Notes: generated from the letters alone by a model not told the origin. DNA of 64,000 nucleotides from Salpingoeca rosetta (GCA_033442325.1 JAWQFM010000009.1:145968-209967), one strand, 5' to 3'. Counted from the stretch's first letter, positions 4,458 through 17,972 are shown. Numbers and translations: made by a program.

Positions 4458-7400
4458 ATGGTCGTGGCAGCAGCCCGCAGTGCAAGCGCATCAGCTGCTG
4501 CTTCAACGGCTGATCGTGGGCATGGGCAGAGTAGAAAGAAGAAGGCATCAGCCACACGCAAGCGGCAACAACACAGCAGCAAACCGCCACAAACGCGCAG
4601 ACATGGCAAGGCGCAAGCTCAACAACACGCGCACCAGACACATCACACCACAAAGCCTGCCCCAACAACGGCATGGTCCTTTGACCGACACTCGCTCGCC
4701 ACAAACCGGCTGGCCCTGGCAGACCTCATGCCCATCATCGGCTTCCCACGTTCCAAATGTGCGTGCGTTTGCGTGTGTGCTGGGAAAGCAACCGATTCAG
4801 TTTCATTGATTTTGTTTGTGCCTGTTCCTTGATCCCTTAAATAGTTGTTGAACGCTTCCCAACGTGCTGTCTGTGTTGCTGGTCTTTCTCTGCACGTCCT
4901 TCTCCCTTTCATCTGCGCAGGCTCACCTCATACGCGCCACTACCTTGTCTGCTCTGCTGCTTCTTTGGTGTGACAGCCTTTGTGAAGCACGTGGACAACA
5001 TTGTGCGCAGCAAGTATGGGCAGGGCCTCTTCGACACCATCGTTGATGACAACGGCCACGAACACAACATTGCCGTGGATCACCGCCGTCTCGAGAAGTG
5101 CGTCTGTCTGTGTGCGTCTGTCTGTGTATGTGTGTGTGTGTGTGTGTTTGCGTCTGTGTGTGTGTTTGTGTGTGTGTGTGTGTATGTGTGTGTATGTGAG
5201 CGTCGATATATATGTGTGTGTTTGTGTGTGTGTGTGTGTGTGTGTTTTGGAACCACTCGAGAATGTGTATTGGCTTGTGTCTCCATTGCATTTTGTATGT
5301 TACTCATCCATTCGACAACGCATGCATGGCTGCGTTGCATTGACGCCAGGTTTGCGGCCCGCCTGGCCCGCCGCACAAAGGTGTTGACACGACGGCGCGA
5401 CTGGCTGCAGAGCGAATCGCGCCTCGTCTTTGGACCGGGCATGCAGCCACTTACTTTGCGCGCGAACAATGAGAGCACTGACAGCAACGGCGATGAGGAT
5501 GGCAACCCTGCCGCTGAAAGCAATGTTGTGATTCTGATGCTGCACGTGAGCGATGCCACGCTGCAGAGCAAACCGTGGCGGGACCTGTTGGGCAAGTTTC
5601 TCTGCAACCGATTCACGGGCGAACACGCCTTCAACATCTTCCGGTCCGTTACCTGTGTGTGTGTGTGTGTGTCTGTGTGTCTGTGTGTGTTTGTGTGTGC
5701 GTGTGTGCGTGTGTGCGTGTTTGTGTGTCTGTCTGTGTGTGTGTGTGTGTCTGTCTATGTGTTTGTGTGTGTGTGTGTGTCTGTCTATGTGTTTGTGTGT
5801 GTGTGTGTGTCTATGTGTTTCTGTCGATGCCTGCCTGTTGCGCTCTTCAAAATTCCGCCTACTCCTCCACTAATACGCCATCCCAAACACTCTCTGCCCC
5901 CCCCCCCTCCCTAACCACCACCCCAAAATGAAACACAATAGCACGGGCCCGCTCGAATCGCATGCGTGCTTCGAGCACCCAGAGCCGGCAACGGTGGAGA
6001 CGATGCAGAGGGCTGTCGCGTGGCTCGCCGCGCTGCCCACAAACACATCCGCAGGCGACGTGCTGGACTGCCTCAACACCGTCCACATTGCGCACCCGAA
6101 CGCCACCTTGCACATGGTGGGTGAGGGTGCGCGCAGCCAGTCGTGGATGCCATTTACAACGCCTGCTCTGCTATCCTGCACACATGCACACAAACACACG
6201 ACCGTTGTGCAAACGTACCATGCTCGCGCACACACACACACGCACACACACTATTTTGCACATCAAATCCGCACACCCTACACGTACCATATGTTAACTC
6301 ACACCAACATCGCACATTGTACACACGCGCGGGTGTGGCGCTGAAGGTGGTAGAGGGCGTCATCACTGCGCCATCGCTCGTGCAGTCGCTGTGCGAATCG
6401 TTCCGCACGCGCGTGAGTGTGTCCGCGATCAACACTGGGCCCGGGAGCGACGCTGTTCTTCAGGCCATCGCCACGGCGACTGGCGGTCGCTTCCACAGCT
6501 ACACGGGCGACGTGTCGTCCCCATTCTTCGACGGCACCCCGGCCAGCCCAGAACTCACCCAGCTCCTCGCAGAGGTGCACCACGAGTGGCTGTGTGTGTG
6601 TGTGTGTGTGTGTCTGTCTGTCTGTCTGTCTGTCTGTCTGTCTGTCTGTCTGTCTGTCCGTCCGTCCGTCCGCGCATAAAGGAAATACCATTACGACACA
6701 CTAACGCCCTCCCTCGTGTGCACCACATGCTACGACCCTGCTTGCGCGGTGTACGCAACAGATTGCCGAAGCGCGGCGCATCCAGGGCCTGATTGAAGCC
6801 ATCATGGTCGAGGAGGAGTACAAGCGCAGGCACGCCGCAGACATGATGCACGCACAGTCCGCAACAGCACAAAAGGGGCAGCAGTCCCCTGCAAAGAAAG
6901 AGCAGGAGGAAGCAGACTGGCTCGCCCTCCACAGTGCGTTGCTCTGTTTGTGTGTGTGTGTGTGTGTGTGTGTGTGTGTGTGTGTGTGTGTGTGTGTGTG
7001 CGTGTGTGTGTGTGTGCGTGTGCGTGTGTGTGTGCGTGTGCATGTGTGTGTGTGTCTGTCTGTCTGTTTGTGTGCTACGTGGATGTACTGCTGTGCAACA
7101 ACAATCAGTTGTGAAGCCCAGCCAACGCATGCGTCATCTACGTCATCTGACTCACAACGTGTGCTTTCCGCGGTTAGACCTGAAAGCGCAGAAGCTGGAC
7201 TTTTATTCCGCTGTAAAGCCAGCAACGTTCAAGCACGTGCAAGATGACGTGAGCCCATGATTGCATGCATGCATTGCGATATGGCTGCCCCATTGAGCAA
7301 GCGAACGAACGAACTGGCGAACGACCGAATTCACGCACTCACACTTACACACACACACTCACTCTCACGCACACACTTACACACACTCACACACTCACAC

Positions 7401-16400: not shown

Positions 16401-17972
16401 AACGTGATGTGGACGATACGCTGCTCTGAACTTCCCTTGTACATCCCATGCGCCTTTTTCTCCACTAATTCGTTCCCACACATGCACCACACACCACACA
16501 CACACCTCACACCACGATTATGAACCAGGCGGACAACACGTTGATTTCACTGGACGACTGCGAGCGGCCGCGTGCTGCCGGGGCGAAGGTGCTGGCAGAG
16601 CACCCGCTCTTTGACGAGAGTTTCTGCCCCGGTGAAGTGCAGGTGGACAAGGATGGCGATCTTGCTGTCGTCTTCTATGACAATACCGGCATTCCCCTCT
16701 GCGACGTCACCGCTTACACGCTGCCAGATCAGGGGTGCGTGTTTGTGTGCGTGCGTGTGTGTCTGTGTGTCTGTGTGTCTGTGTGTGTATGTGTCTGTGT
16801 CTGTGTGGGTGTGTCTGTGTCTGTGTGGGTCTCTCTCTCTCTCTCTCTCTCTCTCTCTCTCTCTCTCTCTCTCTCTCTCTCTCTCTCTCTCTCTCTCTCT
16901 CTCTCTCTCTCTCTCTCTCTCTCTCTCTCTCTCTCTCTCTCTCTCTCTCTCTCTCTCTCTCTCTCTCTCTCTCTCTCTCTCTCTCTCTCTCTCTCTCTCT
17001 CTCTCTCTCTCTCTCTCTCTCTCTCTCTCTGTGTGTGTGTGTGTGTGTGTGTGTGTGGCCATCTATGTTTGTAAGTGCCCCACTTTGCACCCTGTTCCCT
17101 TGTTGTGTTGTCTCATACCTCCTGTTGTTGGTTGGTGTGCGTGATGCGGGTGCAGGTTGTACGAGAGCTTGTGCGCGTTCTGCAATGAGCGTGACAATGC
17201 GTGGGTGGGCATGCGTGTGGTGTGCCGCTATGACGAAGACAATTTGTACTACGAAGGAACCGTGCTCAGTCGTCTCTCACGCAGCGGCCGCTGGTTCAAG
17301 ATCTCGCTCGACGACGGTCATGTTGTCCGCGCGCAGGTGCTGCTCTCTCGCTTGTTGTTGCTGCTGGTGGCTGCCATTGACACTGGCGTTCTGTTTGTCG
17401 GGACTGTTTGTGTTCGCGTCTGTTTATTTTTGTTTGTGTGTGTGTGTGTGTGTGTGTGTTCGAAATTCGTACTCACGTTCGATTTTGCTTTCCACAACGA
17501 CATCGACAATAGGAGCCGCGCCATATGCTTGCGCACTCGCGCGATGGCGAAGGGGAGCACGTGCTTCGAGCAGGGGACCACGCCATTGCTCTCCACTACC
17601 ACGGCGAGCCTGGCGACCCTTACGAACACAGCATCTTCGGCCCAGCAAAGGTACACACGCGCGCATGTACGACCACGTTGTCGAAGGCATGCGAAGAAAG
17701 CACAAAGAGCGGGAGAGGCATGGCTGCTCGTTTGCATGCTGGGTGTGGCGTGCTCTTGTGTGCACGAACGCCCACCACACCATTGCCTTCCTGCATGCAT
17801 CTTACTCATGTGCGCGCGTGTGTGTGTGTGTGTGTGATAGGTGTTGGCGAGCACGCTGCATGCGATTACGGTCCGGTTTTGGGACGGCAAGAAGTGCCAG
17901 CTGCGACGGAGCCAGTGCTATTTCGTATCAAAGCAGTACTACCAGGCGGCGTGTGAGGCGCTGGATGAATGA
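4458..17972 (+). CDS. VWA3B: VWA3B-like protein: two VWA domains, DUF4537 Tudor-like modules and an embedded NDK-like domain; >25 exons
   Basis: VWA3B-type motifs [41 protein letters not shown] (MIDAS DxSxS), [40 protein letters not shown] and [11 protein letters not shown]. The frame was followed through phase-compatible GT-AG junctions from ~12594 to TGA at 17970-17972. The start codon is tentative. Confidence 0.82.
8118..8332. repeat. Intronic (CACT)n/(CACG)n tetranucleotide array
   Basis: Seen directly, just upstream of a 3' splice site in the VWA3B-like gene. Confidence 0.95.
14861..15763 (+). other. NDK (NME)-like domain encoded by 4 internal exons of the VWA3B-like gene
   Basis: Spliced sequence [10 protein letters not shown]...LTREDAREFF...[29 protein letters not shown]...[19 protein letters not shown] matches the NDK pattern ERT..IKPD...SGP...HGSDS...A.REI..FF. 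Confidence 0.85.
15945..16041. repeat. Intronic (CAA)n trinucleotide tract
   Basis: Seen directly. It lies inside intron 15764-16071, so the poly-Q/N/T ORFs here are artefacts. Confidence 0.95.
16830..17030. repeat. Pure (CT)n tract of ~200 bp in an intron
   Basis: Seen directly. Confidence 0.97.

Follow-up and report, generated by a model that had tools for sequence, protein, structure and literature searches.

In its canonical form nucleoside diphosphate kinase (NDK) is a free subunit of 140-190 amino acids (aa), and the NDK folds of NME5/RSP23, NME7 and NME8/9 are building blocks of the axoneme. More generally, NDK folds recur in radial spokes, among the inner proteins of the doublet microtubules and in dynein docking complexes. 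A ciliary location is also predicted for VWA3B, which has been detected in wild-type human respiratory cilia and is reduced or undetected in the cilia of DNAH5-defective patients (PMC12310455). The PDB holds no VWA3A or VWA3B chain. We know of no partners of VWA3B and of no position for it in the axoneme. Here we describe a gene of the choanoflagellate Salpingoeca rosetta, PTSG_11678, that joins the two families in a single protein. It lies at 4458-17972 on the plus strand of a 64,000-nucleotide (nt) stretch (GCA_033442325.1 JAWQFM010000009.1:145968-209967; the window), and we propose that it specifies a VWA3B orthologue which gained an NDK domain once and retains it as a constrained, non-catalytic module of a flagellar scaffold, a reading to which we assign a probability of roughly 0.65. 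This domain combination is visible in public databases and undescribed in the literature, in which we found no mention of PTSG_11678, no described link between NDK and VWA3 proteins, no paper bringing together nucleoside diphosphate kinase, Salpingoeca rosetta and Nme, and mentions of DUF4537 only in three unrelated studies, in goat, yak and human.

The segment 4458-17972 is one expressed gene giving one mRNA. By peptide mapping it corresponds to PTSG_11678 (our P0158; present in NCBI, UniProt and EukProt), whose peptides align to the plus strand over 4458-17969 with 100% identity as 26 exons and 2530 aa, followed by the stop codon at 17970-17972. The exons are in phase throughout with that single stop, and the gene bounds of 4458 and 17972 read in the earlier note match those of the annotated gene. 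The locus consists of many short exons, with introns rich in (TG)n and other microsatellites, and its elements are the following.

4458-17972, plus strand: PTSG_11678 coding region; 26 exons and 2530 aa in the public model, 27 exons and ~2569 aa in the RNA-supported model.
5943-6870, plus strand: N-terminal degenerate VWA-like region, ~residues 246-410 (exons 5943-6119, 6350-6574, 6762-6932).
8405-9075, plus strand: VWA_3 domain, P0158 residues 544-697 (exons 8363-8494, 8704-10542; Pfam VWA_3).
9076-12449, plus strand: low-complexity, probably disordered region of ~1100 residues (exons 8704-10542, 10758-12449; from translations and contig ends).
12594-13411, plus strand: DUF4537/Tudor-like module 1 (exons 12594-12768, 12921-13041, 13288-13411; DUF4537 profile and junction reads).
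13596-14857, plus strand: disordered linker exons (13596-13973, 14274-14363 and the first part of 14528-14929).
14858-15763, plus strand: NDK-like domain in four exon pieces (14858-14929, 15095-15151, 15288-15426, 15663-15763).
15095-15151, plus strand: 57-nt micro-exon (19 aa), absent from the public model (contig arithmetic in X4 and X6, bin depth, orthologues).
15704-15706, plus strand: codon of the His matching the catalytic His118 of NDK (LLHGSQS at 15698-15718; alignment to canonical NDK).
16072-16734, plus strand: DUF4537/Tudor-like module 2 (exons 16072-16287, 16529-16734; Pfam E 6e-11 and 1.3e-14).
17156-17972, plus strand: DUF4537/Tudor-like module 3 and stop codon 17970-17972 (exons 17156-17336, 17513-17650, 17841-17969; Pfam and annotated model).

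The three domain families read from the DNA in the earlier note, VWA, DUF4537 and NDK, were all matched in our Pfam scan, and the precomputed public Pfam assignments for PTSG_11678 list VWA_3, NDK and DUF4537. The VWA_3 domain (PF13768) scores 63.4 bits against a cut-off of 27 bits (E 3.3e-17) and carries a MIDAS-type (metal ion-dependent adhesion site) DxSxS motif, DMSDS, at 8423-8437. The N-terminal VWA-like region is weakly supported, with a phmmer search using the VWA piece giving a domain at P0158 246-410 and Pfam giving two VWA_3 stretches. DUF4537 (PF15057) is matched on the pieces 15853-16371, 16469-17071 and 17145-17834, and the RNA-supported C-terminal part of the protein contains three such modules (its residues 25-123, 563-678 and 689-801), arranged as one module, a linker and a C-terminal tandem pair, with NDK between module 1 and the pair. 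Hence, the order VWA-Tudor-NDK-Tudor proposed earlier holds, while the number of DUF4537 modules is three rather than two. An ESM Atlas search with one Tudor exon returned generic Tudor/Agenet leads only. No relative came from a word search in which the 784-aa open frame 10431-12782 (region 95-779) was the query, and since low-complexity words swamped its 8000 candidates this result is uninformative on absence.

Direct evidence for the splicing pattern comes from RNA mapping of 10900-16825, using two stranded RNA-seq runs (X21 and X22) together with assembled contigs from two other studies (X4 and X6). In X21 and X22 each exon in the mapped stretch is covered on the expected strand, and of the four bins that contain intron only, three have a depth of zero and the fourth (15454-15651) one of 0.05-0.4. 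Junction reads in these runs connect 12768/12921, 13041/13288, 13411/13596, 13973/14274, 14363/14528 and 15763/16072. One contig from each of the other studies (2637 nt in X4, 2639 nt in X6) extends from ~12314, inside a poly-Asp repeat, to ~500 nt past 16731. Both contigs contain 91 nt for exon 14274-14363 and 298 nt between 14926 and 16070, which, when left-shifted cuts are allowed for, equals the sum of 15095-15151, 15288-15426 and 15663-15763. Reads and contigs connect DUF4537 module 1 in frame with the four exons of the NDK domain and, beyond these, with the C-terminal DUF4537 pair. The last three exons have no read evidence because a (TC)n repeat at 16830-17029 blocks read mapping. Seven junctions had been predicted from the DNA, and all are GT..AG and phase-matched, with a single correction of 1 nt (15427 to 15426). 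The in-frame fusion of a VWA3B core, DUF4537 and NDK that they implied is borne out by junction reads, contigs, annotation and orthologues alike.

Upstream of these exons, a 4045-nt X4 contig covers 10900-12295, continues ~2.6 kb further in the 5' direction, which is enough for the VWA exons, and ends at ~12333. The poly-Asp coding repeat 12296-12366 interrupts both assemblies, and for this reason no contig or read runs from the VWA to the NDK exons. The repeat lies inside one open exon and read depth across it is non-zero, so that the join is supported by two contigs meeting in the repeat, by read depth, by the annotation and by the orthologues. The break is in line with a reading in which the NDK and Tudor exons are a transcription unit of their own, or an optional cassette, and the joined form is read-through or a minor isoform, and a few reads do start at 14361. 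We regard such a non-functional fusion as very improbable. Among reads and contigs of the mapped stretch no junction skips exons (for example by joining 13411 or 14363 to 16072), and transcript starts do not accumulate ahead of the NDK exons. Moreover, the exons are all in phase up to the one stop, NDK is located inside a conserved VWA3B architecture and not at an end of it, and both Barroeca monosierra and an environmental relative (P0006) encode VWA and NDK in one open reading frame (ORF).

It should be noted that parts of the locus also attract reads with foreign ends. At 15642-15762, made up of NDK exon 3 and 21 nt of the intron before it, each RNA run has ~100 reads that, like contigs of the two other studies, match only this ~120-nt stretch and run on into sequence absent from the window, …GTCTTCACCTCCTCCT on one side and CAATCCCCTGGACCGCCG… on the other. 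It seems that S. rosetta has a near-identical copy of the stretch at a second locus, which is expressed more highly. At 14367-14460 reads enter the intron at 14367 from the foreign sequence GGAACGCACAGATGACAAGAACCACTGAGC, all with C>T at 14388, and these are probably from a repeat copy expressed elsewhere rather than from an internal start of PTSG_11678. The foreign ends at 14367, 15642 and 15762 occur nowhere on either strand of the 64-kb window and so are not alternative exons of this locus within it. The CAG/CAA (poly-Gln) coding repeat at 14599-14623 draws reads and contigs of other loci, with raised depth on both strands, C>A at 14614 and many loose ends, and the depth and variants at this repeat are not to be taken as properties of PTSG_11678. 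Among the intronic microsatellites are the (TC)n repeat mentioned above, which is a perfect 200 bp, a 96-bp (CAA)n repeat at 15945-16040, and (TG)n or (CACT)n-type repeats in many introns, with TG/AC or CACT/TCTG runs of 44-76 bp at 6613, 6949, 7574, 8224 and 8542.

The RNA-supported model of the C-terminal part differs from the public PTSG_11678 model at three places, giving a corrected protein of ~2569 aa. The acceptor at 12921 is used in RNA instead of the annotated ~12954, adding 11 aa (12921-12953), and the acceptor at 16072 is used instead of 16099, adding 9 aa (16072-16098). The third change is the micro-exon 15095-15151, which encodes the alpha1-beta2 part of the NDK fold. Depth in the bin that holds it (15058-15255) is 3.3 and 2.0, about that expected for a 57-nt exon at the local depth, and its sequence is present in B. 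monosierra, in P0006 and in a second environmental protein, P0160. In the annotated protein, which lacks the micro-exon, the Pfam match is confined to NDK profile positions 40-133, and the loss of this piece from within the fold weakens automatic domain calls on the public model.

By sequence and predicted fold the inserted domain is of the NDK type. The Pfam NDK profile (PF00334; cut-off 27 bits) is matched by the piece 15039-15671 at 29.6 bits (E 7e-7) and by the piece 15338-15835 at E 0.025, while the annotated protein scores 39.4 bits and two orthologues 65.5 and 53.9 bits. In a profile search against the PDB the matches include a bacterial Ndk (E 1.5e-20, 76.7 bits), a sea-urchin NME7-like chain (2e-20, 76.2 bits), Chlamydomonas RSP23 (2e-17, 66.4 bits) and NME3 (54 bits). 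The earlier note had considered a link to the axonemal NME5/7/8/9 type, and here the data part company with it in that no specific affinity is seen: the scores of bacterial-type Ndk are level with those of group II axonemal NDKs such as NME7 or RSP23, with group I below both, and for this reason the domain is not assignable to an NDK subfamily. An ESM Atlas search with the NDK domain gave generic short NDK clusters only, with no subfamily or donor indicated. An AlphaFold2 (AF2) model of the B. monosierra domain, built from five sequences and of low confidence (pLDDT, the predicted local distance difference test score, of 61), has the order beta-alpha-beta-beta-alpha-beta. A Foldseek search of the PDB with this model gave template modelling (TM) scores of 0.5-0.65 at E ~2e-3, with the top matches at TM ~0.65, and all 50 of the 50 matches listed are NDK chains or axoneme and radial-spoke entries with NDK-fold chains that were also found by sequence. 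The model was used for naming the fold only and not for active-site geometry.

The residues of the domain point in two directions. S. rosetta, B. monosierra and a TARA fragment retain the equivalents of His118, Ser120 and Glu129, P0006 differing by an Asp at position 129. On the other hand, Lys12 is replaced in all four proteins that cover the site, by Phe in S. rosetta and by Leu in the others, Thr94 has become Asp or Pro and Arg105 and Asn115 are absent in the orthologues covering these sites, and the Kpn loop is ~11 residues shorter than in canonical NDK. Tyr52 and Arg88 are kept in some of the proteins, Tyr52 being Phe in S. rosetta and Arg88 being lost in P0006 and P0160. All six of these residues (Lys12, Tyr52, Arg88, Thr94, Arg105, Asn115) bind nucleotide phosphates in canonical NDKs. 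The rate of nonsynonymous substitution (dN) between S. rosetta and P0006 is 0.53 for NDK, 0.53 for the second and third Tudor-like modules and 0.96 for the linker, and for NDK against the TARA relative it is 0.25; dN alone is compared because the synonymous rate (dS) is saturated in both comparisons. The NDK domain is under purifying selection and evolves as slowly as the Tudor-like modules. The loss of phosphate- and ribose-binding residues and the short Kpn loop, set beside this slow evolution, suggest that the domain is most likely no longer a nucleoside diphosphate kinase and serves as a non-catalytic structural or binding module.

The main rival to a non-catalytic module is residual phosphohistidine function. 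In such a mechanism the embedded NDK would still act as an enzyme or phosphorelay, with autophosphorylation of the His and local NTP regeneration or phosphate transfer to a partner, tethered by the VWA/Tudor scaffold. Consistent with this are the retained His118, Ser120 and Glu129 equivalents, the retention of Tyr52 or Arg88 in some proteins, the purifying selection, and the presence among the structural matches of the Mimivirus NDK, which has a short Kpn loop and is an active enzyme. The replacement of Lys12 by Phe or Leu in every protein covering the site argues the other way, as do the replaced or deleted Thr94, Arg105 and Asn115, the lost Arg88 of P0006 and P0160, and the Phe at Tyr52 in S. 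rosetta. We consider a surviving enzyme rather unlikely, though it is the likeliest of the alternatives.

As to the family to which the rest of the protein belongs, a HMMER search without a profile, using the VWA piece 8719-9321 against 1.84 billion representatives, returned 251 proteins, of which 20 were looked up. Every descriptively named match among these 20 (seven animal clusters) is called VWA3B or VWA3B-like by its source, with such names given to proteins of Lymnaea, Branchiostoma, Discoglossus, Conger and the acoels Symsagittifera and Convolutriloba. The source names for the Hymenochirus and Nematostella matches are only hypothetical, predicted or VWFA domain-containing, and the choanoflagellate matches are from B. 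monosierra, Salpingoeca infusionum and Diaphanoeca grandis. The animal proteins and that of D. grandis share a layout of VWA_3, one DUF4537, a linker and a DUF4537 pair. Judged from the matches of this one-way search, PTSG_11678 is the predicted choanoflagellate orthologue of animal VWA3B.

The full order VWA-DUF4537-NDK-DUF4537-DUF4537 is found in two further proteins, B. monosierra P0151 (NDK at residues 1704-1828, E 5.8e-18) and the environmental P0006 (1910 aa; NDK at residues 1493-1616, E 2.2e-14), the latter being one uninterrupted 5.7-kb ORF on a 6-kb contig. The environmental fragment P0160 has DUF4537 followed by NDK, and the TARA fragment P0159 has the NDK exons, with DUF4537 in the next gene call on its contig, L004. 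In the TARA Oceans contigs L003 and L004 the NDK-exon introns are placed as in S. rosetta (after ...RRMIG(A) and after ...FFFDPK), and from this gene content and these intron positions uncultured marine relatives appear to share the NDK-DUF4537 part. None of the other 155 family proteins was matched by a profile built from the fused NDK domains, and an NDK is absent from every animal VWA3B examined, as the earlier note had stated, and also from D. grandis. Its view that the architecture is an unrecognised one holds for papers, none of which discusses it, and fails for the public record, where it is seen in PTSG_11678 and in the B. monosierra (EukProt) and environmental relatives. In a midpoint-rooted tree of the Tudor2-3 region only, P0006 groups with S. 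rosetta and B. monosierra (support 99/98), D. grandis is the sister of this group (100/98), and the choanoflagellate clade is sister to the animals. The NDK-bearing proteins form one clade, which points to a lineage-specific insertion, and NDK-bearing VWA3B appears to be restricted to a choanoflagellate subclade.

A single gain of NDK within choanoflagellates is the simplest history. The converse, a VWA3B ancestor that already had NDK, followed by separate losses in animals and in acanthoecid choanoflagellates such as D. grandis, draws on the long linker that animal VWA3B keeps at the equivalent position (185-390 aa, against 56 aa in D. grandis) and on the thin sampling of choanoflagellates and other holozoans. 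We think it unlikely, and give it only slight credence, because the seven animal linkers inspected, which are Ser/Lys/Glu-rich and in several cases have a coiled-coil stretch, contain no detectable NDK remnant and neither does D. grandis, because the NDK-bearing proteins are a supported clade nested within choanoflagellates, and because parsimony favours one gain over at least two losses. The gene structure is compatible with insertion of an exon cassette by exon shuffling, since the NDK-encoding exon block 14528-15763 is bounded by phase-0 introns; the exons 13596-13973, 14274-14363, 14528-14929 and 15095-15151 are all phase 0-0.

Based on these data we put forward a hypothetical history and function for the protein. 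We propose that a symmetric exon cassette was inserted once, within choanoflagellates, into the VWA3B linker, where an NDK-fold domain of ~125 aa now sits after DUF4537 module 1 and ahead of the C-terminal pair, in sequence that is disordered apart from it. The degenerate NDK would then have been conserved as a structural or binding module, providing NDK-type dimerisation or docking as the axonemal NME folds do, and would be part of a large scaffold protein at the flagellum, as VWA3B is thought to be in animals. By analogy with the latter, the S. rosetta protein probably works at the flagellum. Several points weigh against this reading. The conservation of His118, Ser120 and Glu129 could mean that phosphohistidine chemistry is retained, and the active Mimivirus NDK illustrates that shortening of the Kpn loop is not in itself enough to remove activity. 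The contigs bearing the VWA and the NDK exons meet or overlap only within the poly-Asp repeat, with no single long read across it. The ciliary role is borrowed from animal VWA3B, itself poorly characterised, and the S. rosetta cilia papers searched do not name PTSG_11678. Finally, no RFX X-box is found near the promoter, and the one in the 64-kb window compares with ~1.1 expected by chance, which is uninformative.

The permanent capture of an NDK by a protein conserved from choanoflagellates to humans is a testable hint that VWA3B works beside NDK-fold modules. Read as a Rosetta stone, it would suggest that animal VWA3B adjoins a free NME5, NME7, NME8 or NME9 in the axoneme and binds it through the surface that the embedded pseudo-NDK occupies in choanoflagellates. 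We offer this as a doubtful proposal, drawn from the fusion itself, which if true would be the first indication of where this disease-linked and so far unplaced ciliary protein lies. Since S. rosetta is open to genetic manipulation, tagging, knock-out and domain deletion are feasible. In essence, our analysis identifies a clear case of a domain captured in one lineage, where it is expressed and conserved, which offers a testable lead on an orphan ciliary protein; it also corrects the public gene model for PTSG_11678, and it does not reveal a new kind of system.

Compared with animal VWA3B, whose source-named members are the best non-choanoflagellate matches of the S. rosetta protein, the central VWA_3, the single DUF4537 followed by a linker and a C-terminal tandem pair, and the long disordered stretches are alike, and the DUF4537 layout matches that of the Lymnaea, Branchiostoma, Discoglossus, Conger and Hymenochirus proteins. 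The differences are in length, ~2569 aa against roughly 1300-1900, and in the linker, which holds NDK in S. rosetta and low-complexity sequence or a coiled coil in animals. The closest relatives, B. monosierra EP01147_P005627 (2123 aa) and P0006, share the domain order, the lost catalytic residues and the short Kpn loop, with identities of the NDK-Tudor tail to the B. monosierra reference row (alignment A1) of 61% for B. monosierra and 42% for P0006, and they differ from S. rosetta in linker lengths, P0006 also in lacking Arg88 and in having Asp for Glu129. With the group II NDKs (NME5/RSP23, NME7, NME8/TXNDC3, NME9/TXNDC6), which are represented among the NDK sequence matches by PDB entries such as 7jrj, 7ung, 8snb and 8j07, the protein shares an NDK fold set within a larger multidomain protein. 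Its partner domains are, however, VWA and DUF4537, with no DM10, Dpy-30 or thioredoxin domain in Pfam scans of the S. rosetta protein, its pieces and an orthologue, and an axonemal place is known for the NMEs only. Relative to canonical NDK (NME1-4 and bacterial Ndk), the fold, the sequence pattern, His118-Gly-Ser120 and Glu129 are the same, whereas the S. rosetta domain lacks Lys12, Thr94, Arg105 and Asn115, has a Kpn loop with ~11 fewer residues, and forms part of a ~2500-aa protein.

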